Origin: Syncephalis fuscata S228
Lineage: Eukaryota; Fungi; Zoopagomycota
Assembly: GCA_025786725.1 (NCBI GenBank)
Contig: JAHLTZ010000026.1
Coordinates: forward strand, 331,129 to 395,128
Direction: 5' to 3'
DNA length: 64,000 nucleotides
Positions 10,693 through 61,094 of this stretch are shown piece by piece; position 1 is the stretch's first letter; each line of letters opens with the position of its first letter. Under the pieces are notes generated by a model. It was not told the DNA's origin and did not search any database. It saw only the letters and a program-made list of their open reading frames with translations. A program made the position numbers and the translations under genes.

Positions 10693-11733
10693 ATGATATT
10701 TGGTATTCAAACCAATATTTACGCAACCACTGTTGTGCTACTTACAGCTCTAGCGGTCAGTAGCAATGCAGCCTCAATATATAGGCGTGACGATATCCAG
10801 CAAAGTAAGCTAGATATTCTATTTAATGTGCACTGGAGTTTACAGATTTTAGCAGGCAAATTCTTTGATCAGCCTATCAATACGCCCGACGCCTTTAAAC
10901 AAAGCACACTTACCATAAACAAGGTTCTAGAAAGTAAGCATGGCATATCTTATGCCGAGGGGACCTATCAAGACAAGCCTATCCGCATTGCTTGTGGAAA
11001 CGATAATGATAACGCTGACGATCATGAGCTTTTGGTGCTCAAGGTATGTTCTGCGAAAAATACATCAGCAGCAGCCAAAGTTTTAAACCTGGCAACAATA
11101 GGATCTTAGGAAAGCCACTGCCATTTCACGTGCATCGGAACCCGGCTACAATTATCTTGCCTACCCAATACACGACTTTAACATTAATGAAAATAAATGC
11201 TACATCACCTCAGCTCGATGCGATCACAAACTAAGCGATCAGAATGAAAAGAAACTAAGTCCATCAATTTTATCCAATACAAAGCTTCCTATGCTAGGAA
11301 CGCAATATTTGGAAGGTAGATATTGTTTGTACATTAATTTACAACACTAACTTATATTATCAGCACTTTATGCTTTACGTAGAATTGGATGGTCCTATGG
11401 CGATGCAGAGCCAGAGGGTAGGTTTTAATTATTAGTACATTATTAACCAGTAACTGATTTTATTAAATGCTAGACTTTTGTGTCAATGCCGATGAAAACG
11501 AAGGTTTGCAGCTTGTTGTTCGCAACTTTGAAAAGGCCGACTATTTAAAAATCTCGGGTACTCAAGGTGTTAGCGTCAAGCGCTTTGTTGAATTGGTGAA
11601 CTGGCACACGATCTATCTGATTATGCTGACCAACAGCTTTATCAATGACTGGCTTTTTTCCGTAGGAGGATTAATTAAATCCCGTTACATTGTAACTGAA
11701 ATTATGAATGAAAAGTACTATGGCCATATTTAA
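10693..11733 (+). CDS. Secreted protein-kinase-like protein (pseudokinase); 4 exons; C-terminus may extend to 11843 if there is a 1-bp indel
   Basis: Signal peptide TTVVLLTALAVSSNA followed by IYRR. First intron 11044-11101. ALYALRRIGWSYGDAEPEDFCVN and LVVRNFEKA map to the kinase catalytic-loop and DFG regions. Confidence 0.6.
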
Positions 11734-27290: not shown

Positions 27291-28717
<1,427 letters not shown>

Positions 28718-29763
28718 ATAGACGCTAGCAAAAGTGCCATCTACCGGTGTGTCCCTCGGACGAGTATTCGAGGTGGCAGCATGCATCTTTTTTAATAATT
28801 GCCTATTACTCTTTGCGAATGTATATGCCGTTCTTTATTGAAGGCAGGGATCGTTTATAAGCGATCAGGTGTAAGGGCCGATACTTTTCCTTTTATTTTC
28901 CGCATTAAAGTCTGATGCAAACACATACACGCACACACCTACACAAGAGTGACACAATGTTTATAATAGAACAATACAAATGTTACTAATGAGCTATTAT
29001 TAATAATAACTAACTGCATGTTTACTTAATATTTATTATTATGGCTAGTTTATTGTACCAGTATTATATTGTTTAAGCAATTGTATGCTTAAGTGTTTCA
29101 ATAGCTATAACTTGCTGTTTATCGCTAACACTCGGCTGATGTTGTGTTGTAGGTTATGGTTTGATTGACTATAGCAATACTTGTACGTCAATATTGCCAC
29201 AAGGTAAATTGTTCACGCGTTTAATGCAATTGCAAGGCCTAATCATCGGTCACTGTGCCGTGCTGCACACTCACGGTAACACAAGCAACACATGATGGGC
29301 ACTTGAACACGTTATTGCAATAAAATGTAATATCAAATTACATTAAGTATATTTGTATATTTATTATTAAATAATACATACATAGATGTAATGCTTATAT
29401 TTTGTCAACAACTACTAATATATATATATAATAAATATTTCTTTAATTTATTAACAAACATGATACATTTGCCATGCATAAACAACCAACTTGTAACAAC
29501 ACATTTGTGGTCATTGATTCACATGTATCGTGCATTGTTTAATGTTAACTGAGAGCGATGTGAGAAACTATTCTAGTCATTATCTTTAATACCGCATGCT
29601 AATTTACCACATGAATTGCCTACTATGGATATTGTTATAATCATATACTGTTCATTGTCTTACGATAAATAGATAATATGCAAAAGTCTATTCCACCTTC
29701 TTTAATTCATTCTTCTAGTCGCCTCTCTGTACTCTTCTATCTTTCTATCAAAACGATACAACT

Positions 29764-30399
29764 ATGAAGTCCTTTGGTGCTGTCGTACTCGTCCTCGTAC
29801 TGAGCGTTTTATCCAATGTAGCTGTAGTGACCGCCAAACCCATACCGTTTTATAAAGGTATTTGCAATAATGCATAACTAAATACTAGATCATCTATAAT
29901 ATTTGCTATTTGTTCTAATACATTGATACTGGTAGATAGTAGGTTATAAGGCTTGGCCGTTGATGTAAATTAACAATTGTATCTTTCAATGGTTCTACTC
30001 GACATGTCAATATAATAGGTAATAAGCACGGATATTTCACAAGCTATTTAGTACTAACAATACACTATTTGACACTTTTAAATAACTATAACAGTCAGTA
30101 GGTTTTTAAACATTCAAATAAACGACAATTAAATAGTAGCAATAGCCTGTAGGTGATAGTATACGACATATCATTGGCAATACTAACCGTATACTATCTA
30201 CATGATTTGATAGCCCGTATATGGCGCTTTTGATTGATCAGCAAATGGACTGACCGATCAAGATTAGCCATTATCGTGCTTGCTGGACAAGCACATATAT
30301 AAGGTTAGTTGCAATTGTAACAATAACTACGACTCATACTGTATTACACTTACTAACACTGCGTTACTATATCAACATTATAATATATTAGGCCATTAG
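29764..30399 (+). CDS. Small secreted peptide gene with 3-nt micro-exons (family member B); 3' end uncertain
   Basis: 94-nt exon 29764-29857 (MKSFGAVVLVLVLSVLSNVAVVTA|KPIPFYK, phase 1). It is followed by YAG-NNN-GT units at 29936, 30095, 30146 and 30214, plus a non-canonical unit at 30019. TACTAAC branch points at 30052, 30181 and 30351. Confidence 0.7.
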
Positions 30400-30990
30400 T
30401 CTCAGCAAAATATTCAAATTATTAATTATATGTTTTCGTTTTATTGTTTTCTATATCAGTAAACACCGGTAAAATTGGATTTGTTTATTAAAGACTTATA
30501 AAAACTACAACTACTTTTGTTCTATTTAAAATGATTATGATGCATTAGCTATAAGTAATAATTGTAACACATTTATTCAAGTAACAAATAGGAAATAAGT
30601 AATCCATTCAAGTTATATTGTATAAATGTCAATTAGTTATTTATAATGTGTTTTTCTGATATTTGCCATATATTTACAATTTAGATGTACATTATTTTGT
30701 TCATCTTAGAAAGTCACTGGGTGCATTTAGAAATAATAAACAATATAAAATTGCAGTCAATTAACTTTATATATTATTTGATATTCTAACTCGCCTCTCA
30801 TTATAACTTTAAAATAAATAGATTAATAATATATTTAATAACACTAATTACTATTTATTCTTCCTTTCTTTAACTTTACAATGAATATAGCATTATAATA
30901 CTGTAATGGGATCCCTTCAAACTATAGTTTAATAGCAAATCATTCTAATTATATTTTAATAACTATGTTCATTACATCTGTGTTTCCATT

Positions 30991-31558
30991 CTATCCTGTC
31001 CATAAATAGCGACAATCCTTATTAACGCACACGTAGTAGAGGGTCATTTTAGTATCTGCTCGACGAGAACTCGATTGAAAGTATACTGCTTCGGTAGATC
31101 CACAAAGTGGGCACGCACTCGTGGTACGTGGCTATACTTCGTCAATCACCATTCTATATTCTTGCTATCACTCTATCAATAACTTACCAGTGACGGATCG
31201 CTACTTAGATCCATATGTGCCATATTGCCCTCACTATCATGGACGATGATATATCATTAATTAATAGTCACTTGCCCATTCACTATATAGCTTACGATGG
31301 TGTTTGCTGCACTACATGTTCGTACACTCGATAATTATCGGCATGTTCACGATAGTCACAGTTGCGACACGCGTACATAAGACGCCTATGCGCGCGATCC
31401 TCCCAGGGGTAAAGCATATTCGAGCTGCAATTAAATATAGATTAACAAATACATACCAAAGTTTAAAGTTAAATAGCTACTTGCCAGATCTTGCAATACT
31501 TGAAGGAAGGCCGTGCCGTCGACTGGGCCTCATTGCTTTGATTAAAAAAGTTATCCAT
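30991..31558 (-). CDS. RPB9: RNA polymerase II subunit 9; 4 exons
   Basis: FKYCKICSNMLYPWED, ACRNCDY, DPSLPRT..CPLCG.EAVYFQS and MTLYYVC; first intron is GC-AG (31425-31484). Confidence 0.93.
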
Positions 31559-31737
31559 GACAGCGGCAAATGCAGTGTCGTTAGATGGAATAAGATAGAT
31601 AGGTAAGAGTGTGCAAGTTATAACAACAACAACACTTTGAAGTTATAGCCTTTTCGTTGATTCTTTCTCTTTACAACTCTACACTCACCACACACGCACA
31701 CGTCCTTTTCGTATAGGATTCATTGGATTATCTATCA

Positions 31738-32199
31738 ATGCCGGTTCCATTTGAGGCTCTATTGCCACTTGGCATTATTACTGGACTGATGGCCGCGACT
31801 GGATTTGGTTTGCGGGCAATAAAAAGGTCTGCCAACGAAGGTCATGTAAGTAGATAATATGCGCGCATATAAATATACATATATATATATGCTAGCTAAC
31901 AAGATCTAATCATCTCTAAATTGATTCTCTGTTAACAATACTAATATATATATATATATATATATTGTATATATTCTAATAAACTTTAGAAACCACGCTA
32001 TCACTTGGATACTTGGGATCATAGCATGATGCGTCGTGATAATCGTTTGACGGGCACTTTCCGTGGTCAACAGGCAAGCAATATTGTTTATTTAAATATA
32101 TTAATATTAACAGGCTAAACACAATAGAGCGATGAAAAGGCGCCAAGTGATTTTGCTACCAGCAGTATTTGGTACGCAGAAAAAGTACCAATGATTTAA
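31738..32199 (+). CDS. NADH:ubiquinone oxidoreductase MWFE/NDUFA1 subunit; 3 coding exons
   Basis: MPVPFEALLPLGII and KPRYHLDTWDHSMMRRDNRLTG; second coding intron is GC-AG (32074-32127). Confidence 0.88.
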
Positions 32200-32273
32200 T
32201 TGAGTTTATTATGTTTGGCGATATATATATATTCATATAAATATATAACACGGCAATACATTTAATAATGTGA

Positions 32274-32765
32274 TTATTTTCTATGTTGTTCTACAGTAGT
32301 TGGGTGGTCGTGGACCAATTCATTAAATCGATGACCTTGAATACGTAGCCAGTGATCGGCCAATTTACCCGAGTAGAATAGTTTACTAATATTGTATTTG
32401 TATTCATAGTATTGATAGTTATTAGTAATGGATATACAGCTAGAGATTACTTTAGATTACCGTGATGCATAAAGTTCATTGATTGAACTACCTAGTGCTT
32501 CACTTTGCTGTATATTCTCCAGTGCATTCGATAGTTGATTTTTAAGATGCTCTTTTTGAGTACGATCATCTTGATGAATAACATCTATATTGATGATTTA
32601 TAAGCAAAGTACAAGCTATAATTGATAGAATGCTACTTACCAGCTAATAGACTAGCCATTGGGTGGCATACTTTATGTTCAGTTATCGAGTTGGGAATAG
32701 TAACCGGTTTTAACAAAGGCATTTGTTGGATGGTATTTGCTAGTGTAGTTATAGTTGATTAACCG

Positions 32766-32796
<31 letters not shown>

Positions 32797-35434
32797 TAGA
32801 TAATGAATAGCTTACTATGTAATTGAGTCGATTGTTCTAAATGGGAAACAATCTGTCGTTGTTCCTTGGTCATTGCTTGTTGCATAATTACTAAAGTGAT
32901 GATATTAGCAACAATTAAATATAATGAATGACAATTTACCTTTAGCACTTAAATCACCAAGATGAATGGGTAGCGAGTCAAATGTCTAATAAATATTAGT
33001 TTATGTATTCTTTAATTAATGGTGTATATACCTGATAGGTTTTGAAATGAGTAGCATTGTAGAGTTCAAGTATAGCAGGATCTGTTTTTATACGGTTATT
33101 TAATAGTGACCCACTTAATAGATTCTTGTTTGATCGACTATACAGCTAACCGTTAATACCAACACTAATGCTTAACTAAATGTATGAATACTAACTCTGA
33201 TGATATCGAGAGAACTTGGCCTCGAGTCACGTCAACATTATTAAATAGTGCACACTCCTGTGCTATACACGTTGTTAATTGCCGTTGATGGTTAGCAAGT
33301 ACTTTGGAAAGTGGTGCAGTTTGATTTGAATAAATATTATTCGTCTTTAATGCGTTCAATTTAATGAGTCGTCGATATTAATATTACTATCGACTAACCT
33401 GTAAGCTCAATTGAAGAATCTTTTCTCGAAGCGTAGCAGTAGCTTTTGTAATTGGCCTATCCATAGGCGACGTTGAATCTAATCATCAATACATTAGCTA
33501 TATTAATAGTTTATTACACTATTATTACTCTCTTACTAGTGTGTCATCTAGTGCATCTAATGCTTCATTCTCTAAATTATTTGTGTGTTCCCAAGTGATT
33601 ATCCACTGTAGAATGCTGATTTAAATATTTATCTTGTATAAATTATTCGCTTTCTCTAAACCACTAATATGTGCATTACATAAGCTATTTTTCTATTAAA
33701 GATATACATATACATATATGTATTAAATTCGTATTAATGATTGAATGAATTACTACATAATTGTTTGAGCTCGCATTTCATCCAGTTCACAATTTGATAT
33801 CGTGTCTTTTAAAGTCGATTCTGCTTGTAAGATATCATCTAATATTGTTTTACTTGTTGCCTGTAATTGTTTAATATCTATAAACAATTGAACGTGTGCT
33901 TGTAAACAATCCTAATTATAAATATATTAAATACATAATAGCATTAATACTATTAAATGAATACCTCAATTGTTGTTAACAGTGGTTTATATCCTTCTTG
34001 TTCCAATTCTTTTCTATAGTATAGCTAGTTAGCAAATAAATGGCTTGTATATCTTAAATGACTACCTCATAGTTTGAGCATCTTTATTAAAATCAACACT
34101 TGCTATCCTATCCTTTACTTGTTGACTAGACATTTTTAATGAAAGAGCTACCGCTTTAAGCAGGACTATTGGATTTGACGAGTTATATATCTCCTACATG
34201 TTAATAGCATATCAGTAGTAGAATGACACCGTATCCATCTACTTACATTGATCCTTGTTACCATTGTCTCTTGTTGTTTCTGTTCAATTGCTGTGTTTCT
34301 ATTAAAGTTTAGATATTTGATCTGTGTGCACTTAATACAATATACTTACGTAGTTAAATGTTGCTTAAATGTTGGTTTCACACTATCAACCATAAAAGAC
34401 AATTGTTTCTATATCGCGTGTGATTAAGTAGATCTATAGGCTATTCACAACTATTACCTGAGTCTGTACAATATCCATATCCGATACTCGATATGTAGTA
34501 TTTTCTCTACATTAACCAATTAGCATTTAATATTGCAGTTTACTAACAACTTACTGATTTGCCGATATTCGTGCCATTGCTTCCATTGTAGTACTATAAG
34601 TTTTCATTTCTTCAATTGTAGATTGAATACGTGCACGATAGCTACGTTTTAAATGAATTCTATGTTGTGCTTTTCTAATTCTCTCTTCCAACTCATTAAC
34701 CGTATTCTCTACCCATTACTGCCATTAGATTCGTGTATTCAACATGGCTATATATACATATATACCTTTCTCACTAATCTGCTTCACCAATAGTTGACAT
34801 TGTTGTTGTTGTATTTCAGTACACTGTACAATAGCTGTCATCCTATCATTTTGAGCTTTTCTTGTTTCCTCTAACCGTGTCCGTTCAGTAGATTGATTGG
34901 GTGGCAATTGGTGCTTTTCATAAGCACTAAATATTTATATATCATTAGACATTTGTATATTATCGTTATAATAGCTTACTATTGAATAGCCCGTCTTACT
35001 TTTGCTACATGTCTAATAATAAAAGTAATAATAATAAATTTAGTATATTAATTAAACTGAATTATTATTATTAATATATCATTGCTTACGTGCGAGCAAA
35101 TAAATGTTGTTTAAGATGTTGTAATATCGGTTGTATAGGCCCTCGGCAAATACTAAAATACGTTAGATATACGCTATTTATTACTTTTAGCCACCTACGT
35201 TTCAAGTGTCTGCGGCGTAAATTGTTTATTATCATCGATACCCTGCTTATGCTGTGTTTGTATTAGTGTTATGGTGGATCGATAACCCAGTTCTTGAGTT
35301 AACCACGTATATGTCTGTTCAGACAGTTGCTGTGGTGAGATAGCTGAACTTTCACTATTTCTTGCCTGTACAGGCGTTGTTCGGCGTGTGGCCGTTGTTT
35401 TTATCGTTCTGGTCGGTCGTTTAGACGATGCCAT
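32274..35434 (-). CDS. Augmin/HAUS complex subunit 5-like coiled-coil protein; many exons
   Basis: N-terminal TWLTQELGY...ICRGPIQPILQHLKQH...RHVAKVRRAI matches the HAUS5 N-terminal pattern; coiled-coil exons follow. Confidence 0.6.
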
Positions 35435-35696
35435 ATTACTGTAGCGTGTAAGAGTAATCGTGACCAATAATAAGAAAATACTTTTCTATCTACCAAGAAA
35501 GCGAAACGCTACTTTATTTCTCTCTTTCTCTCTCCCCTTTACTCTTTTCTCCAATATCATATTTCATTTATTATTTAGTAACGTGCATCTAGTGTGTAGT
35601 TATCATCATTTATCTATTGTCTTTGTTTCATCGCAGTCTCGTTCAAGTGTATAGTTTATTGTTATTAGGGTAGTCGGATTACTATAACGTCGACGA

Positions 35697-36485
35697 ATGG
35701 CGGCTTCATCAAATGGTGGTTTGGCTGGTCGAGGCGCCGATTCAAGAACACCATCGCCGCCACCACGACTGGTTAAAAGCGCCAAAAAGACTGGAAAGAG
35801 TCCGAGTCCATTTACTGGATTGGGCAAGGCTCAAGCATCTCGACTATCGCTTACGTCTGAAGAAATGGAAGATATTCGAGAGGCATTTGAGATTTTCGAT
35901 TCAGATAAAGATGGATTGTTGAATGAGGTCGAGTTACGTGTATGTGATCCTACACTAAATTGCCTATCTACCAACTGGTTACTAATGACGAGAATAGGCG
36001 GCATTTAGAGCATTGGGTCTACCGCTTCGTCCCTCAGAGTTTGTCCGCATACTGTCCAAGGCGGGTAGACGGTTTGAGAAATCACCGGAAAGCCTAATAG
36101 GCTATAAGGACTTTCAACATTATGGTAGGTCAATATAGGCAATTATATATATATATATATATATACGCATATCATTAACTTTAAAAGTATAGCTACACAT
36201 TTTATGCTTCGCAAGTCTTCAGAACATTTAGTCCAAGATGCTTATCGTCTATTTGATATGGATGGCAAGGGTGGCATTACTGTGGATGATCTACAACGAG
36301 TGGCGTTGGAACTTGGACAAGCAGTTGATGATGTGGAGTTACATCGTATGATTCAGGAATTCGATAAAGATGGTGACGGCAAAGGTAAATTTAAACAATT
36401 GGTTTAATGACATATTAGTAATTGTTGTTTATTAGTGACGGAAATGGAATTTATGCATATACTACAGCCTAGAACAAGTGAATAG
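35697..36485 (+). CDS. Centrin/caltractin-like EF-hand protein; 4 exons
   Basis: IREAFEIFDSDKDG and AYRLFDMDGKGGITVDDLQRVALELG...MIQEFDKDGDG. Confidence 0.85.
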
Positions 36486-37192
36486 TTATTAAGGCTTTGA
36501 TTTATTTTATTGTATAATATATATTGCAGTTTAATACAATAGTACTATATATATGATTATCATCAGTTGTTAACACTAAAAAGTGGACACTTAATTTGTT
36601 GATGTACAAGGTAGCGAGAAAATAATAGACCTTGATAAACTACTTGCTATTACACTAAATATACTGCTTGTGTGTTTATTGAAATTGATATCGCGGTGTT
36701 ATACCTTACAAAAGCTATTTTGTGGATAAACAATGATATATTGTATCGGAACTGGATAATAATAATAATAATTTGTATTTGTTTAGTTTATTAACAAGGC
36801 AGTGGAAGTATTGCTTGTATGTTACCAAAGATTTTCTGTTATAGGATCGTTATTCTGGATATAATATATTTTTTTAAAATATTAGCATTACATCGTAGCA
36901 TTTAATGCTGTCGCGCTATATTAGTAGACTAATAATAATACCAGTGGCTTATTTAGTATTATTACTACGAGTTTACATAGTTAAATAAACAACTGAATGC
37001 AGGCTTGTTGGTAATATAATAATGCATTGATTAAAAGCGGATAAATTGGAGTATTGGATGGAACTCGATATGAGAATGGACTAGAGATTGCCGTTAAGTG
37101 ATCTTGACTTTTGCTAAATTTAAATACTTAAAGTATATTAAACTAACAGTTCAGTCCTATCACCAATACAGATATCTTGGAAGCAACGCTTA

Positions 37193-38209
37193 TTCTGTGT
37201 TCATAAACATATACAATCATGCAGTATAATTAGCATATGAAATATAGATATATGATGTCACTTACAAGCTATTAATATTAGATTTTAATATAAGTATTAA
37301 ATATTATGTAATGGGCGTATTATTAACTAATATCTAATGTTACTTACGAGCTATCATTATGCTTAAATTGGTAATGCACGCAGTATAAATGATGGAATCA
37401 GCACATAACCAATTATATACGATATTACTTATGAGCTATTAGTGTTAAATTTTCAAAAACATATATGTATAAAGCCTGTTTAGTGAATAGTTAATTGATA
37501 CAATTATTACTTATGACCTATAAAGTACATAGAAGTAATTAATATGTAAATACTCTATATGCATTGTTACCTACGTCCTATTGATACAATTTATTAAACA
37601 CACACACAATGTATAATATGTAATTGGCATGTAGTTAATTGATATACGATAAAACTTACGAGCTATTCGTGTTGGTTATTAAAGATACAGTATATAATAT
37701 CTAATTAATACATCTTTAATCAAAACACAAAATTACTTACGGGCCATGAACGCTATTTTAGTTATACAAATAGTATTTAATTAGCTAAATAACTAATATT
37801 TTAGTTTTATTTTACCTCCTATTAATGGAAATTCAACATATTAGCACCATCAATACAATATTTTATTTATATTTAATGTTAAGCCTACCTTCATTTAATG
37901 GATTTGATTTATTTATTATACATTAACAAATAGCCATTAATCAACACATCAAAAACATATATTTTTATTACTTACCAACTAATATAATGCATTTAAAGCG
38001 CACAGTAAATGTTGGGATAACTATTTATAATTGCGACTTACTGGCTAATATTATGATTAGTTAGTTATAATCTAGTACGTATGCCAATATGCACATTTGT
38101 TATGATTATAACATACCATGACGGGCTAGAACTGGATTAGCATCCACCATGGCTGTACTGACTACAAGGGCTACGAGAATGTGCAGGTAACGGCAATAGA
38201 AAGCCTCAT
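37193..38209 (-). CDS. Small secreted peptide gene with a chain of ~11 micro-exons (family member A); 1-bp deletion in exon 1 as assembled
   Basis: Signal exon 38117-38209, then TAG-NNN-GTA units every ~60-90 nt. The spliced product ends in a TAA formed across the last junction. Confidence 0.75.
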
Positions 38210-38861
38210 GGTGTCTTGATTTGTTAAATCAAACAAGTAAAATGGCCGATATATTGTAGTAATGATGCTACTAGTTATTTGTGTATATTTTGTGGTCTAT
38301 TTAAATCTATAATTGTGCTGAGATGTCGGCAGAATGTTTTATGTCTAATATGCCATTGAAATATAACGTGAACCAATAAAACACGTATAAATAGTAACAT
38401 AAAGCTTGTGTATTAATATATTTTTGCTTTGCTTTATGTAGTCTAGTTCTTTGTTTTCTAAAATATTCAATAACAAGTGTTTTCATGTACTTAAACAAAG
38501 TAGGTTGTACTGAAAAACCTAATGCATTGTGTTTTTTGTGAATGCATATCATATGCGTAAACTATTTGTAGTTTATCAAGCCATAGGGTTATTCTAGACA
38601 GAAATCGTTATCATAAAATAAGTATAAAGCAAAATGCAGTGCACACAGGTATTATGTGTTTATATCATTTATTGGAAAGTAATCGTAGTATGCTATCATG
38701 GCTATTCAAACAAAAGCAAGAATATAATTATATAAAATTGAAGTCTTCTATAATATTAAATATAAAGCAATATAACTGTTGATATTTATAGCATAGCAAT
38801 GATCAGCTAATTGCCATTGCTACAATAGTATTAACGATAGCAATGGTTACCATTTAGCCGG

Positions 38862-40588
38862 TTAAATAATTCGTTGATTTTGTGACTGTTTACATTTGTC
38901 TTCACTTGCCCAATATTCCCGTACTTTATCCTTCTCTTTTTTCCGCTGATTCATATTTACTTGCTTAGAACTATAATTCTTTTATAATCGTTAATTATTG
39001 TTGATTAAAATTATTCTATTCTTACTTGTAAACTAAATATGTCCGACTGATTATTGGTTTGATTCGGTACATGCGGAACAAATATTCTTGGCGTTGACGC
39101 TAGCTTATCTAGCACTGACGTTGATGAAAGCTGTCCTTTCTTTTTAGATGACAATTTAGTAAAAAACTCTTCATTTGTTTTTTGACATAATTCTTTTGTT
39201 AAAGCTTTGTTTTGTTTTGACGAAAGTGCCTGTTTGCTTTTTTTCTTAAATAACAATTCAGTAAAAAACTCTTCATTTGTTTTTTGACATAATTTTTTGT
39301 TAGAGCTTTGTTTTGTTCTGGCGAGACCGCCTGTTTGCCTTTTCGTTCAACTTTGGTGTTTACGTTATCATCATCTAATATAACTGTAATAGATGTAGTT
39401 TTTCCCTTTGACTTATTTAAATATGAGTCCAGTTTTGATCTATGTTTGTATTTTCTTTGATAGATGCATTTGGCATTTCCAAGCAAGCTGTATCATTAGT
39501 GGATGTATTGGCACTATTATCAGTATCAGTAATACAAGTGTTTGTAGTGGTAGCATTATTAGTTGTCGTAGAAGTAACAATACTAGAGTGAGTATTGCCA
39601 TTTTCATTGCTGATGATTTTAGCCATAGCAACATCAGTGACAAGATCTGAAGTTGTACAAGTCGGTGTATTTTCACAATCGTTGGAGATAATTGTGTCTA
39701 CTTGACAACTGGCGCTAAAGATTCTGTAGTTATTTCTGTATTTAAATCCACAATCTTACTCCAATCAACCTTTTGCATCTTATTGGATAATGTTTCTACT
39801 GAATCGAGCACGTCATCTGAATGGCTTTTCATCTATTTAGCTGTCAGATACCATTATTACTATCGTTGTTACAGCTCGCTATTTACCTCGTCCGCAACTG
39901 CTTTGCACATATCTATCATAAAAAATAAATGACCTGGAACTAATTAAGTAGCATTGCTTACCTGGATGATTGCCATTAGCTTTTTTTCTAGCAGGTTGGC
40001 TCTTTTATGCTCCCATGTTATAGTAGCTATAAAAGTTTTTAGTATAGCTTCATGGAAAAATAGACGTTGTTCCTCTGGCCCATTAAGCAACGAGTATGCA
40101 TTGCGACAATCAAACTTCCAATCCAGAGTTTTGCCTCCAAACTTTCTAGAGACTTTTAAACTGATCTAAATGTATAATTGGATCAATATCTTGTCGATGA
40201 ATTATATACAGCACTAAACACTTGCTTTATCATCTAATTCTTTATTAGTAAATACCACGCCTTTCTCCATATTGAACATTTCAGCTAAAAAACACACTAG
40301 AATTTGTCGTTGATGAGTGTCACATGGCACCAAGTCATATTTGACATTCTAAATAACATTAATAAACCATTCACAACATGGATACTTTACAAATACCTTG
40401 GCACGATTTGTTAAATCTTCTTTTTCGAGAATATCGACCCAACAATCATATAAATTAGTTAACATAAAGAGATAGCCATCAGGTAGTATAATAAACTTAT
40501 AAAACAACCGTTGCTTTATACTAGGTTTTTGGGCTGGTAATGATGTCCATTCAACATCGTTCAATCTAGACAATAAATCTTTACGCAT
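38862..40588 (-). CDS. XLF/Cernunnos (Nej1)-like NHEJ factor with low-complexity C-terminus; apparent indels
   Basis: N-terminal VEWTSL...FYKF...YLFMLTNLYDCWVDILEKEDL..RAK and LDWKFDC fit the XLF head domain; a coiled coil follows. Confidence 0.55.
39155..39345. repeat. Two-copy ~102-bp tandem duplication inside the XLF-like tail
   Basis: AGTAAAAAACTCTTCATTTGTTTTTTGACATAATT recurs at 39158 and 39260 (KQA...QNKALTKELCQKTNEEFFT twice). Confidence 0.85.
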
Positions 40589-40707
40589 TTTAAATTCTTT
40601 TGCTTAATAACAATAAAATAGAAAAATGGCCGTTTATATCTGTTTTATTCTTTTGTTTTTATTGTTAAACAAAATAGGCAACGCGTTTATTTACGATTCC
40701 AAACACC

Positions 40708-42333
40708 ATGCACGCTTATTATAGACCAATTCTACCGGTGTTAACACGACGATTCTACACGTCTGGCCAGCCTCTAATGTCTGGCGTGTCTACAATACGC
40801 CAAATATTAATAAAGCAACATGCAGGCCAGCCTACTTGTATACACGGCTGGATTCGCTCAGTGCGAAAGCAAAAGAATATGGCGTTTGTCGATGTCAATG
40901 ACGGCAGTTGCATGCGTGGTATTCAAGTCATCGTCGATCAGCCTATTGACGGGTAAGTTATTCGGATATCTGCTATTGACGTCCAGCTCTGACATATTCA
41001 GTAAAGACTGGCAGCTGGTTGCGCGGTGCAGATCGACGGACATTTAGTTGATAGTCCAGGTCATGAACAGTCGCTTGAACTGCATGCTCGAAATATTAAA
41101 GTAGTTGGAGAATGTGATGCAGAGGTATGTAAACACATAGGTATTCAGTTGGTTTACTGATTTGTAGAATAGAAATATCCATTACAAAAGAAAAGACATA
41201 CATTAGAGTTTTTACGAGAATGGCCTCATTTAAGATCACGTACACATACAATGGGAGCAGTATTACGTATAAGAAACCAGGCAATTCATAGATTGCATCA
41301 ATTCTTTCAGGTCATTAAATTAATGTTATATAGTGTTTAAACTAATAGATGGTTTAGAATAATGATTTCTTACAAATCAATACACCAATCTTGACAGCAC
41401 ATGACTGTGAAGGTGGTGGCGAAGTATTTCGTGTAAGCACAAATACACCAGCTGTCCATGGTAGCAATAAGGTAGAGGATGGCTTAGATAGTAGTAATAA
41501 CGAGTTTTTGGTCGACCGGTCTATCTTACGGTATCGGGCCAGCTTCATTTGGAGGCTATAGCTATGGCTGCATCTCGAGTATACACACTGAGTCCTACAT
41601 TTCGTGCGGAGCCTTCACAAACATCCCGACATTTGGCGGAATTCTGGATGTTAGAGGCCGAAATGTCATTTATTACTGAGCTTGATCAATTAATGGATCT
41701 GTGTGAATCATGTATTGTCAATACAACACGACAGCTACGCACTACACTACCAGATGAGATAAATCTATTTAAGCGATGGGTTGATCCAGAGCTAGAAAAG
41801 CGGCTTGCTTTGCTGGCTGCAGATCAGCAACAGTCCTATGCTCGTATGACATATACCGAGGCTATTGAGGTGTTGCAGAAAGCGCCAGTCAGTTTTAAAT
41901 TTGCGCCTACATGGGGTGCGCCACTTCAAAGTGAACATGAGCAATATTTAGCTGATCGTCACTGTCAGCGTCCGGTATTTGTCACACACTATCCTGCTTC
42001 GATAAAACCATTCTACATGTTGGTTGATCCTGCATCGGCCTCTGAATCAGATAAATCAACAGTGGCATGTATGGATTTATTAGTGCCAGGTGTAGGCGAG
42101 TTGGTGGGAGGAAGTCTTCGAGAGAGCAATGAAGCGACATTGAGAACACGTATGGAAAAGGCGGGCGTGGATCCACAAGCTCATGCTTGGTATCTTGATC
42201 TTCGAAGATTTGGTGGTGTACCTCATGGTGGCTTTGGTCTTGGACTAGAACGTTATTTGCGGGCCGTGACGGGTATAGCAAGTATCAAGGATCTAATACC
42301 ATGCCACGATCCATTGGCCAATGTCCCTGCTAG
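40708..42333 (+). CDS. SLM5: Mitochondrial asparaginyl-tRNA synthetase; apparent 1-bp indels near 41508 and 42302
   Basis: [62 protein letters not shown] and [11 protein letters not shown]. Confidence 0.92.
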
Positions 42334-42337
42334 CTGT

Positions 42338-43574
42338 CTAATAGCTATCATTAAGCAAGTGTTTTATGATTCCGAGTGCGCTGTAGCGATATGTATCACT
42401 GCCTAATAAAATATAATGATTAAGATGATGATAGAGTTCATATAGCTTTACTCGGCGATCTCGCTGTTTAGTAGGTGGAAATGAGCGGTTGTATTCTTCA
42501 TAAAAATCTAATAATAATAATGTATATATATAAATATAAATAGTACTATACAATTATGTGCAATATTAATACCATGCGATAACCCGCCAACATTCTATTA
42601 TGCCAAACTCGGCCTCATAGTGTCCCTGATTATTTGATTAATAGTTTAATTATTAAAGTTTGTAATTTGCTTAAAAATAAAGAGCAGGATCATAAATACT
42701 GCTTGACCTGTATCGGCTCGTATACCCCAATTACCGGCCCCTAATGAATATTTAGTAATAATAAATATCATGTTGAAATACTTGCATAAATTCCATGAAT
42801 TAGACTTGGCTTAATCAATGTATTGTCCCCAATAATCTGCGGTACTATTTCTAATAATTCTTCACCTAATTGAAACAGCTCTTGATCATGAGAAAGAGTC
42901 TTAAACAACGGCAATAACCGCTGATTTTGCCAAAAGCTAGTCCAATTGTCGATACATGGATCGTTTGATTGTGGTGTTGCTCCACAATAAGTAGTGCATA
43001 GAAATCCGTAATAACACGGTTTATCATTACTTTGACAGTCATCATTCCAAGAAGATCCAATAGCTTTGGCAATTAGTGGATCGTCTCTATTCACTGAACT
43101 TATTTTATCGCATTTATGCAATTGAGCCAAATGTTGGGCTAAATTACGCTGATGGCTTTATTACAGTAATGATGATTTGTCAATTTATTTACTAGTTACC
43201 TGTGCTGCAGCATCCTTTTTGCCAGACATTTGAACATATTCAGTGACAAGAAAGGCACCTTTATCACTACTATCTAACTCTCCATATAGTATTGGCTGCG
43301 GTGCAAATCCTTCGACGACCTTATTGATCAAGCTTAAAGATAAATACTCGGCTTGAAACATCTGCAAGGCTTTATCTCCATAATGAACCTAATATATTGT
43401 TAATAAATATTGTTAATAAACATGGCTACCTACTTTGACAAAAAAAGGTCCCTGATCTGTTTGATAGCAACTAGTAGCGCTGGTATCGCCACCGCTTACT
43501 ACGCTTGCCTTATATACAGTTGCGCAGTGTTTGTTTTGTAATAACGCTTTTACAATACACGATATTGGTTTCAT
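42338..43574 (-). CDS. Fructosamine/ketosamine-3-kinase family protein; multi-exon
   Basis: VSGGD...PFFVK, MFQAEYLSL, LAQLH, YGF, PSLIHG, GNWG, DPA, GHYEAEFG and LYELYHHLNH. Confidence 0.88.
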
Positions 43575-56167: not shown

Positions 56168-58283
56168 TCTTGAATGCACAGCCAGGCTACTCGTATACAA
56201 TTGTTGTTTTGTCTGTTAACAATGTGCTTCTTACACTCTTATAAACTGAACAAAATATCATTCATGAAGCTAGAGAGAGAAAGAGAGGATATGTTAAGAG
56301 ACTGAACTATGTATTGTTTTTATTGTGTTTTGATATGAATCATTTGAGTAGTCAAAGAAAGTGTAGAAATATTAGAGACAACAAAATGATTTACCTAATG
56401 AAATATAAATGTATAGAATGCATGAACAATATAGCTATAATATATGTGACTGAATAAGCACAATGAATGAACGTGTAAAAATACAACTAGCAATAAATAA
56501 TCGGTTTTTTATTAATAATGCATAATTAATGTATAATAGAACGAATATACAGCATGTTGCGAATAATAGAAAGTAATACTGTGCTGGTAGTTTAGTAAGT
56601 AAATGGGTCAAGATTGATAGCTAAGGCAAATAAGTATCCAACAGGCAATGATTTGAACAGAACGTTGCTACTATATTATAAAGTGAGACTCGAAGAATGA
56701 AAAGCAAAGGGAAGGAGAGAAATAAATAAGGCGAAGTTAAAAAATAAGGACACTATGAATTAGAGGATAATGGATAAAGCAGCTAACAATAAGCAAAAAT
56801 AGCTTCAAGTTGCTATATAACAATAATATTTGTATAATAACAGCAACTGGCCAAATATAATAATGCTACAGCAAAGGGAATTGAGTAGCATGTCAATAAT
56901 ACTGCCATTATTTTTGTTAAATAAAATAAAATAGATTTATGAGTATAGTAACGTTATATATTTAGTTTTAATGACGCAACATCACTATTATGACTATCAA
57001 GTGTGTACAAATACAGAAATCTACATGTATTTTATAATTACAGATTTACATACGACTATCTATACCTAATGTAATACGGCATCTACAAAGCCATATTAAT
57101 TAATTTCAATAATTAATGAATAGCTATTTTACTAAAGAATAGTAGATGAATTATAGATTCGAAGCTACTGTACTTTGACTCCCTATCTTTAAACTGAAAG
57201 TTAAAAAGATTCATAACTCAAGTAAGCCGTTGATCAATTTTAATACTGAAAAGTGATTTGTTGAAGTAATGCTACATCAACTCCGATTGAATCAATCAGT
57301 CATAGTTAATTTGCACTATTTTCAATATTAAAATAGATATTAAATAGTAGTTTCATGTCGCTTACAATAAAATATAATAAATAAATGTTAATCCATATCA
57401 TTGCTACTGTAAAGTATTCAAAGCATTATAATTTGCTTATTTAATAGCACTCACCATTTAGTTCCATGTTTAGTAGAACAACAATGTGTAGTTCAATCAA
57501 GTAAAGAATGTCAATTTCGATCTTTTGACACTGAATCACCTTAGTCTATGTATTAATTATTAGATTGGAGTTATTCTATTTTAACTTTCATATCTTTTCT
57601 TTATCCATTTCACTTCCCTTTTCTTACCACTTTTAAATACAATTAAACACTCATTTATCAGTGTGACATGTATAATATTACATCCAACATTAATTAATTC
57701 ATGTTTAATTATTAATACAATGACGTAATTACTTAGTTATCTTGATTATTGCTTTAACATATATATATATTGTCATTTATTTAGTCAAATTGGCTATAGG
57801 GAAATAGCTGTTTTACTAAAGAATAAATGACAATAATAAGATTTCATTAAATTAAAAGATTAAAAGCCATTCACCCCGTATGTGACTGGTATAGCTTTTG
57901 CATTTCTTTGCAACAATCTCCTACGCTTGTCCCTCCATAATTTGTCATTGTTTGTATGGGCTAGTATATTGGTGCAACACCTTTGGTGCCTAAAAAGGTT
58001 CCTTCGACTTTTGAATTCGCCTATTACTATTTTGATACAAAAACATGTGGTCACTGTCTAAAATAAGTCAATCTGTTACTTGGAAATTGTACGCTTTTAG
58101 TAGATGAATTAAAGATTTAAAGAAATTTACCGCGCACAGCACCTCCTCTAAATTATTTCAATCTCTCCTAATTGCTCGTAGCTTTAATTTTTTTAACGAA
58201 AACTCTAATAATTATATTCGCCATCTAATTTCTATTATATCTATTGCATAATTTACCATTTGCCACTTGCGCTAATTAATCTA

Positions 58284-61094
58284 ATGGCACCCGAAGCTAA
58301 TTCAAAGGCTTTGTTTCCCAATGCTATGGGCAGTGCTATCCGGGAGATGCACAACGTTAACCGAGATAAGCAACGTAGCATTCGAATAACCATCGAAAAT
58401 CATCACTCAACGCTTCGACTATCGGGTGCACGATTTGATTGTCAGGGAAGCAGCTGCAAAGAAGTACCAAGTCATGTCGTTGATTCGTGCCATGAACAAA
58501 CAACGCAGATTGTGTCTGTAATGCCTAACACTGCGTGTAGTGGCTATATAATCTACCGGATGCTTGATCATGCACCGGCTCTGCCCCATGAAATGGAGTT
58601 ATTCGTTCTTATTATCTGGGATGTTCCCATTGTAGGCACCAACCGATATCTGCTTGAAATCCTACAAGCCTCGCCTGGAACCCATTTACTACGCCAAGAT
58701 AATACTGTGCAGGAAATCATAGACTATAGGCGTAGTCATCGACTCATGGCAGCTACACATGCCCAATCTCAAGGCTGGAGTGTTGCGGATAAGGCCTTTA
58801 TGGCTATTGCTGCCATGACCAATACAATTAATGCAAAATTGGAGCTACGTATTACAAACGTTCCGGATGGCTCTTCGAAGCTGCTTGATGCACCTGAACA
58901 CGTCCAGTCTACGGGGTAAGCTGTACACGATCTAATTGAGACAATATGTCGTTAACTCAGTATGTATCAACATTAATCTTTATTAGCGAGTCGATCGATT
59001 GGGGCTTTAACATTGACCCCATATCGCCTAAGCCAGTACTACGAAATGGTAAGAAATAGATCGACTAATAATAAACAAAAAGCACAGTCACGTATGCAGT
59101 AAACTAATCCAGAACATCCTGTCGCACTGTCCTTTAGACTCCTGTTGTGGCATGCTAAAGAGGGCAAACATGGTTGTACAGCTGAATAACCAAACCGACC
59201 GAATGTATCTGAAAAATGCTCGACTGTGTATTAAAGAGGGGAATTCAATAGCCCATACGTTTCATGATGTTGCACCGCAAGATCAAGTGTTGATACCATT
59301 TACTGCCCATCGTAAACTAAAAGGCTGTCTCGTCTACGAGATCACTACGCAACAAGCGGTGAAGGCTGATGCGATTGCTGTAGACACAGCTGCTGCCTAT
59401 CGTAACCATTGTCTATTTTTATTGATTGCGTGGTCTACTCATCCACGCAAAGGCAATCGACTCTGTGTTGATGTCGTGCGCGCGCGATGTGATATATTTC
59501 CTGGTACTGATCAACAATTATCGCAGTTTTACGATGCTTACATTCGCTACCTGCTGGGCTCGACGACACGGCCATCAATCTGGCAATTGGCAAACGGCGA
59601 TCGTATTAAAATTACGTCGTTTATTGATGCTGGGCTACATGACGTCGTTCTACTGCTGGATATTGGCGATGTTACGCTTGATTTGGCCCGTGCTGAAGCA
59701 CCATTATTCCTTCCAAATCTTGGCATTGGGTAGGTTATTAGGTATTATAATAATAACGACAACGCTAATAGGAATGGCAATTGATGCAATAACACGCGAT
59801 AATAGTGTCACAATGAATAACTCGCTGGCCGATGTGACCGAACGATTTGCGCAACGCGCGCATTGGAAACAACAACAGTTGTTATTAATTGTTGAAAATA
59901 CCCATCATAACTTAACACTTACGCCGATATGGCCCATTGAAAATATTGACCAACAAATAAGCCAGGGACGTCACGAGCTAAAAATGTTGAATCGTGCACG
60001 ACTCCACTGGGCAACTGAGGGCATTCGGATTTATCAGATTATTATGCGCAACTCAAAGACTGCCAGTCCTAATATTATTTATTTCTTAGTTGTACGTGCG
60101 CGCGACACAGAGCTTAGTGTTGGAATTATGGCTGCCTGGGCTTCCGCTTATTTGGAAAGCTCGATCGATATGGATTCCATTGTTAACTGTGTACGTATGG
60201 TGCCGAACATGGACCGTTTACCGATGGCTCGACACATTCAGCAAGATATTCAACTAAACAACGGAACCGCCTTTCAACTGACGGCATTTCGTAATCCCAC
60301 TATGCCATTTACCCTTACACTGACCATAGGTCATGCAAGTAGCAATCAGGTAAACAAAACAGCCATTTACGTAGTATATATTGTTTATCATTATACCATT
60401 ACATAGATACAAAACTGGCCAGAGCAGCGTACATTCGCTATACCAGCTGGTAAGTTATAACTTGCAGCTAGCATTAAAGCTAATCGTTTATATTATAGCT
60501 GGTTTATGGCGACCTTTACAGGGACATATTAACTCACCGATTCCACCACAATTACGCGTTACAATGCTTAACGATGAAAGTGGATTGCAGCTGGGACATT
60601 CGCAGGTGTTCAGTGTTGGTTATCAATTAGCAGCAATACCTGAAAAAACCCAGTTGCCCATAACAAAATCGGTTTTTAACTTTAAATCCCTTCCGGCCAA
60701 TGAAGAGCGAAGTATTTATATATTCCACACTTTACTTGACACGTTCAGTGCATTTAAAATATGGTTTTCTGTACAAGCAAGGGGCGATTTATTAAGTTTC
60801 CACGCTAAATGTAGACTGGATGAACAAGAAATGGCGACTTTGGAATCTACAATGTCTAGGTCAATGTGCACGGCGACGGCACTGCCTGGCAATGATCAGT
60901 CCAATAATTCAGTGGCTGTCTTTAGTCAGCCAGACGGCCAAGCATTTTATGTTGCACTTTGTATTGGCCGCAATTTGAATGGCAATCGAACTGAATTGAT
61001 CATATGCTGTGCCGATCAACGTGAAAAAGTAGAAGCTTGCGTGCAAGCATCGAATGAACATCTGCGTTCGTCAGTAATGGAGGTGCAAGAGTAA
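58284..61094 (+). CDS. Unknown protein with ~4 tandem actinoporin/aegerolysin-like beta-sandwich domains; multi-exon
   Basis: Repeated pattern (I/V)x(I/L)xN...LxL...G(Y/C)(I/L)(I/V)Y...LFxLIxW...GxN in successive ORFs. Copies 3-4 are more diverged. Confidence 0.5.

Follow-up and report, generated by a model that had tools for sequence, protein, structure and literature searches.

The micro-exon genes (MEGs) of schistosomes join a signal peptide to a coding region that lies for the most part in very small symmetric exons; they were overlooked by automatic annotation, and the skipping of exons yields near-identical variants (PMC4350168, PMC10526429). MEG exons are mostly 15 bp long (6 to 81 bp, with some of 3 bp), the introns between them range from 0.1 to 5 kb, and the genes are apparently restricted to flatworms (PMC4350168, PMC10526429). 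In Tuber melanosporum, alternative splicing of tens of 3-bp exons has been reported for the nank genes by Iotti et al. (2012; Fungal Biol 116:261), whose findings are given here as relayed by the papers that cite them (PMC4986451, PMC10197012, PMC3689799, PMC13449251). By these accounts, the nank genes of this ascomycete encode large intracellular NLR-like proteins, and alternative splicing has been proposed as the source of their diversification. Fungi also splice isolated exons of 1 to 3 nt, as in Trichoderma Xlr2 (PMC11121469) and in the Coprinopsis annotation, which holds 27 three-nt exons in 26 genes (bioRxiv 10.1101/2024.05.10.593147).

We analyzed a stretch of 64,000 nt (the window) that forms the end of scaffold JAHLTZ010000026.1 in assembly GCA_025786725.1 of Syncephalis fuscata (Zoopagales, Zoopagomycota). 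Members of Syncephalis are parasites of other fungi, chiefly Mucorales, and S. fuscata is accordingly no pathogen of humans, animals, or crops. An earlier note on this DNA had proposed a secreted-peptide gene with about one intron per codon, here called gene A, and had known of no such family described in fungi; the latter statement is too strong as regards codon-sized exons, which are on record for Tuber nank in the citing papers. As for the gene itself, our best explanation, taken as a whole, is that gene A is probably a damaged representative of a Syncephalis gene type which has escaped annotation and encodes small secreted peptides. A centrin-like gene and an XLF-domain gene bound the interval in which it sits; no gene is annotated in this interval, and we found no long open reading frame (ORF) there. 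Two further genes of this type, B and C, are described below, and all three are missing from the deposited annotations.

The likeness to MEGs lies in small symmetric exons of a single phase (3 or 12 nt in gene A, 3 nt in B, 3 to 12 nt in C), in the occurrence in a parasite, and in having escaped annotation; the putative signal peptide would be a further point of likeness. The Syncephalis genes differ from MEGs, however, in that introns are short (46 to 88 nt across the three genes, with one 162-nt gap in gene C), exons are mostly 3 nt long, and the genome is fungal; no sequence relationship to MEGs was detected, which points to convergence. With nank, as the citing papers describe it, they share a fungal host genome and chains of 3-bp exons. 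In contrast to the large nank proteins, gene A would specify a small signal-peptide protein in which the chain makes up nearly the whole mature part; the Syncephalis chain is in phase 1, its exons recode junction codons, and it comes without the NACHT and ankyrin domains of nank. The isolated micro-exons of Xlr2 and Coprinopsis occur one per gene, whereas the Syncephalis exons stand in tandem chains. The Syncephalis genes thus belong to neither the MEG nor the nank family. The literature searched, which included few subscription papers, describes no such genes in Zoopagomycota, among fungal secreted peptides, or among HET-domain genes, and on micro-exons in Syncephalis or its zoopagomycete relatives, in HET-domain genes, or in small secreted proteins of fungi it yielded the Tuber citation alone. 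What we found undescribed is the combination of a secreted peptide, codon-sized phase-1 exons, and Zoopagomycota, together with the breadth of such exon chains across fungi.

Gene A lies on the minus strand. Its exon 1 (38117 to 38209, 93 nt as assembled) opens with a good ATG at 38209 and nine codons, after which two extra bases (38181 to 38182) separate codon 9 from a hydrophobic core in a shifted frame; a signal-peptide-like segment and a short pro-segment precede a phase-1 GTATGT donor, one base into a codon. The coordinates and letters that the earlier note had given for 11 downstream units, triplets and 12-nt exon alike, are all correct, and the CTAAY branch points it had seen are found 7 to 32 nt ahead of the acceptor in introns 0, 3, 4, 8, and 10. 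The proposed chain holds for 8 of the 11 units, in which both splice sites are intact: the 3-nt exons CCA (38042 to 38044), TTG (37976 to 37978), GAG (37816 to 37818; donor GTAAAA), CTC (37660 to 37662), GAC (37575 to 37577), CTC (37348 to 37350), and CTT (37266 to 37268) and the 12-nt exon (37741 to 37752). Three units are defective. AAG (37889 to 37891) is preceded by ATG, with no AG, and followed by an intact GTAGGC donor, making it either a dead exon or an abutting AAG/GT junction, while GTC (37515 to 37517) and CTC (37433 to 37435) carry ATAAGT in place of a GT donor. The first of these had been flagged; the two AT donors had gone unmentioned, and the full join of all units proposed at the time therefore includes three for which canonical splicing as 3-nt exons is not possible. 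The introns measure 72, 63, 84, 70, 63, 78, 82, 57, 79, 82, 79, and, last, 71 nt. Between TAG and donor, the region shows a spacing of 3 six times and of 12 once, and no other.

The terminal exon begins after a CAG acceptor (37190 to 37194). The final T of the CTT exon opens a stop across the last junction, as had been claimed, and a second TAA (37192 to 37190) follows directly. The frame thus ends at most one codon further on, no matter which exon is the last, and the coincidence at the junction carries little weight as evidence. Joined in phase 1, the eight intact units give the tail A-I-G-A-F-M-A-P-R-P-P-stop, and the whole product would have about 45 residues, NACHT and ankyrin domains being absent.

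A scan for chains of exons with lengths of 3n identified two sibling genes. Gene B (29764 to 30302, plus strand) is located in the window between a MAP kinase gene and an Rpb9 gene. Its intact, signal-peptide-like exon 1 (29764 to 29857) comprises 94 nt, or 31 codons and a G, and ends at a phase-1 donor. The 3-nt exons ATA (29936 to 29938), TCA (30095 to 30097), CCT (30146 to 30148; 9 nt if an in-frame upstream acceptor is used), and CCC (30214 to 30216; donor GTATAT) lead to a terminal coding exon (30268 to 30302) with 11 residues to a phase-1 stop and a CTRAY branch-point-like sequence 18 nt upstream; a further unit, GTA (30019 to 30021), is followed by ATAAGC and represents a dead donor or an abutting TAG/GTAATA junction. 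Four intact units compare with 0.038 expected. With its intact first exon, gene B is a better experimental target than gene A. Gene C (3340 to 2250, minus strand, of JAIXMF010000009.1, our locus L001) is a near-intact member in the sister species Syncephalis plumigaleata; like gene B it lies between the MAP kinase and Rpb9 genes, and its strand is the opposite one. An intact, signal-peptide-like exon 1 of 97 nt ending in phase 1 is followed by 10 micro-exons of 12, 3, 6, 12, 9, 3, 6, 3, 6, and 9 nt, where 0.24 units would be expected, and by a terminal exon of 18 codons; phase 1 is the only phase in which the micro-exons are open. The secreted-peptide gene with MEG-like logic that had been suggested for gene A would accordingly be joined by two others of predicted like build.

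Exon 1 of gene A resembles the intact first exons of genes B and C, and a hydrophobic core with a small-residue cleavage pattern can be read, by eye and with a hydropathy filter, in all three, broken in A. Aligned with that of gene C, exon 1 of gene A scored z = 4.7 as DNA and, read with X at the break, z = 4.5 as protein. Across A, B, and C, z ranged from 3.4 to 4.6, a modest excess over unrelated signal peptides (up to 3.0), so that the common descent of the three genes is likely but rests mainly on shared architecture. A Pfam search with exon 1 of each gene gave no match, a protein search with 38109 to 38228 (a piece that includes exon 1 of gene A) gave no candidate among proteins of 22 to 70 amino acids, and no protein homologue was found with exon 1 as the query, micro-exons and terminal exons being too short to search. 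The sole HMMER match to this piece of gene A, a tandem-repeat protein of Phytophthora sojae, was rejected, its score being summed over a repeated hydrophobic stretch. The gene A interval is absent from S. plumigaleata, since there the centrin-like gene directly adjoins the AsnRS gene (41549 to 42403 in the window, where it is 100% identical to the S. fuscata protein). Between these two genes, S. plumigaleata lacks the equivalent of 36400 to 40700, that is, gene A, a 101-nt tandem duplication (39136 to 39343), and the XLF-domain gene. The contigs of S. pseudoplumigaleata and Thamnocephalis do not cover the gene A interval, and the Syncephalis DNA covered amounts to about 85 kb in total.

As their sequences show, genes of this type begin with a first exon of some 31 codons plus one base, which would encode a signal peptide ahead of a short pro-segment and which ends in phase 1; exons with lengths of 3n, usually 3 nt, are then strung between short introns, and a short terminal exon follows. 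Residual similarity among units shows that the chain grew by tandem duplication of an acceptor-triplet-donor unit of about 80 nt, selection having retained the splice sites while the intron interiors drifted to roughly 60% identity. Since every exon is symmetric and in phase 1, it follows arithmetically that the reading frame would survive the skipping, gain, or loss of any exon and that each such change would also recode the codon spanning the junction. Transcripts may skip exons variably, as in MEGs and, by the citing papers, in Tuber nank, and so provide a pool of short secreted peptides. The 256 subsets of the eight intact gene A exons correspond to 220 distinct tails, which would be the upper limit of that pool. 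It is conceivable that the peptides, once secreted, act at the interface with the host fungus or with other microbes or competitors. In this way, many variants of a peptide could come from a single gene; a role in parasitism would be purely speculative.

The main rival to variable skipping, unlikely in our estimation, is that these are real micro-exon peptide genes spliced constitutively to give one peptide each, with an architecture that serves fast evolution at the DNA level, through duplication, loss, or mutation of single residues, and not isoform production. Turnover of this kind, with units born by duplication and dying by splice-site loss, agrees with the exon number and content, which are wholly different among genes A, B, and C. 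Short fungal introns are, moreover, normally recognized by intron definition, which favors inclusion of the exons between them. The strict 3n lengths and the phase-1 subsets free of stops are what selection on skipped forms would produce, although duplication and loss would select likewise, and the schistosome precedent and, according to the citing papers, the Tuber one are alternatively spliced. We retain variable skipping as the preferred reading.

The frame of the chain can be stated with more assurance. The signal-peptide first exon followed by symmetric phase-1 micro-exons, as first read in gene A, recurs in genes B and C, where first exons are intact and phase 1 is used. In this phase, genes A, B, and C all stay free of internal stops whichever of their micro-exons are joined, and codon usage in gene A scores +0.57, against -4.05 and -5.96 in the other phases; together, these observations settle the frame in favor of the earlier note. 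It is very unlikely that the chain is instead read in phase 0, as in ascomycete arrays, which would extend the peptide through a terminal exon of 18 codons that include two for cysteine. Exon 1 as assembled does measure 93 nt from its ATG to the donor, the gene A micro-exons and 18 terminal-exon codons are open in phase 0, and this is the commonest phase among the metagenome arrays described below, but three stops in the ATG frame of exon 1 would require two compensating indels, and neither the codon usage of gene A nor the intact phase-1 first exons of B and C agree with such a frame. RNA editing that would rescue TAG stops in the ATG frame was also considered; since it is the shifted frame that agrees with genes B and C, this idea was abandoned.

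Chance does not account for the chain. On the minus strand of the 927-nt gene A region, the strict unit YAG-NNN-GTRRG occurs six times, and on the plus strand it does not occur. Shuffled AT-rich DNA with equally long arrays, which the earlier note had named as evidence that would count against it, was not obtained: shuffled versions of the region contained a mean of 0.037 and a maximum of 2 strict units, with 0 of 5,000 reaching 6. In 300 composition-matched resamples of the 64-kb window, the longest 3n chain was 4 in two instances and never 5; the observed chains have lengths of 7 and 4 (window) and 10 (L001). Among six other early-diverging fungi, no chain exceeded 3 in roughly 100 kb of their real DNA. 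The units of gene A are decayed tandem copies of about 80 nt each. Six pairs of introns are 56 to 66% identical (z = 3.0 to 4.2), and intron interiors, with 24% GC, drift freely. Under neutral decay, retention of AG and GT in 8 of 11 units has a P value of 0.003 to 0.04 and retention of the full 8-nt signal in 6 of 11 a P value of 0.0001 to 0.006, rough figures since the units are nonindependent; the splice sites are thus better kept than neutral decay predicts, indicating selection on them through most of the history of the array. That the units are related by duplication, and that invariant repeats such as a cyanobacterial CRISPR repeat also fit the pattern, could be taken to mean that gene A is a decayed minisatellite or a chance pattern in AT-rich intergenic DNA, the unit of which happens to contain TAG and GTAAGT. 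We consider this highly improbable, given that splice sites are retained as interiors diverge, that TRF finds no array, that a chain is paired with a phase-1 signal exon at three separate loci, and that exon lengths in gene C change in steps of 3. In a CRISPR array or simple tandem repeat, the repeat is invariant, whereas in gene A the triplet varies and the units are about 60% alike. Scarcely credible is a noncoding host transcript whose tiny exons just separate introns bearing small RNAs: host genes of intronic snoRNAs typically have tiny exons set between short introns, but Rfam has no match up to E = 1 in 28700 to 39400, the interiors drift freely at 24% GC, the exons have lengths divisible by 3, and each of the three chains is headed by a signal-peptide exon.

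The condition of gene A was assessed from its lesions. The earlier note had attributed the break in exon 1 to a 1-bp deletion and had left a choice between an assembly error and a recent pseudogene. The break is real in the assembly and is perhaps an excess of 2 nt and not a loss of 1 nt, as DNA alignments to genes B and C place a 2-nt gap in this part of exon 1. With three dead units added, gene A has four lesions in all, and 3 dead units of 11 exceed the 2.2% seen in non-RIP metagenome arrays (P = 0.002). The break and the dead units indicate a recent pseudogene, toward which we lean; a live gene with an assembly indel is possible, and we hold that reading as the less favored of the two. Gene B has a dead unit despite its intact exon 1, and intron read-through at the dead donors of gene A meets a stop within three codons, so dead donors may simply yield shorter tails. 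RIP was rejected as the origin of the AT donors in gene A, dinucleotide indices being near 1. Each of the three genes has one AG/GT spot at the expected unit spacing (37889 to 37891, 30019 to 30021, and L001 at about 3107), which in gene C is a perfect CAG/GTAAGT; instead of dead units, these spots may be exons of zero length that serve stepwise splicing.

Metagenome contigs were scanned for three consecutive TAG-NNN-GTAAGT units spaced 48 to 78 nt apart. At least 120 contigs matched, and after removal of invariant repeats and simple tandem repeats at least 71 arrays with at least 1,215 exons were left, with up to 62 exons per array among the matches listed. Among these, adjacent units are 36, 36, and 52% identical at the three exon positions, versus 58 to 84% at unconstrained intron positions; no other part of the unit is as poorly conserved as the triplet. 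In the arrays among the matches listed, triplet stops number 24 in phase 0, versus 76 expected, and 132 in phase 1. Most phase-0 stops and most dead donors among the listed matches fall in arrays with a RIP-like signature (L013, L047, L051, L070, L116, L118, and L120 carry it), and 17% of units in such arrays are dead, compared to the 2.2% in non-RIP arrays. Over all arrays listed, 92 of 96 dead donors changed specifically from T/GT to T/AT.

Several arrays adjoin recognizable ORFs. HET-domain ORFs confirmed by Pfam lie beside L017, L027, L082, and L100, and L100 keeps to phase 0 throughout its first exon, its array, and the long exon that comes next, upstream of the HET ORF. Between 6 and 34 hypervariable 3-nt exons were observed upstream of HET-domain ORFs in L017, L026, L027, L082, L100, and L120. 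L016, L039, and L092 adjoin NACHT or NACHT-ankyrin ORFs, a likeness to nank. Signal-peptide first exons, in phase 0 where the phase is clear, precede the arrays of L012/L042, L019, L065, L074, and probably L081, and these loci may be secreted-peptide versions in other eukaryotes; two of the first exons in this set end in KR. Arrays of 3-nt exons were also noted on very AT-rich contigs (GC, 0.16 to 0.25; L021, L030, L046, L056, L066, and L119), and the start of a kinase-like ORF adjoining L056 is one that we take to be Glomeromycota-like. Taxonomic labels of metagenome contigs beyond Pfam domains are our own reading; none of the contigs was taken to be human.

The same three-unit pattern had 47 matches in prokaryotic genomes, almost all of them invariant, and none passed the array filter; viral contigs gave no match. 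Most prokaryotic matches are a cyanobacterial CRISPR-type repeat, and in all of them, unlike in gene A, the triplet is invariant. Poly-GGA "arrays" (L003, L044, L105, and L111), considered as poly-glycine genes, were discarded as matches to cyanobacterial CRISPR-type repeats. This repeat (also L125 to L169), TAG-GGA-GTAAGT at a spacing of about 70 nt, is a false positive for micro-exon scans. Invariant matches of the TGG type match a Segatella repeat, and a few short invariant matches from gut-type or unnamed assemblies (L018, L054, L062, L079, L088, and L112) were set aside.

Tentatively, we suggest that chains of codon-sized exons could be a general, annotation-invisible generator of diversity across fungi, in HET- and NLR-like genes as well as in secreted peptides, and that many phase-1 genes of Syncephalis might release combinatorial peptide libraries toward the host. 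Skipping in the latter would both delete and recode residues. Exons of 3 nt elude both gene finders and read aligners, and sequenced fungal genomes may for that reason conceal a whole class of peptides that parasites secrete. Should skipping be confirmed, these genes would be a fungal counterpart of schistosome MEGs at the limit of one codon, in a tractable fungus-on-fungus system. The metagenome arrays extend the single Tuber report to HET-domain genes and putative secreted peptides in many fungi, so that the diversification of fungal recognition and interaction proteins becomes a testable question.

Elsewhere in the window, several long ORFs at 58260 to 61094 and 10693 to 11109 are without a Pfam match. 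For that at 58260 to 58916, no homologue of similar length was detectable, and the ORF at 10693 begins with a signal-peptide-like stretch.
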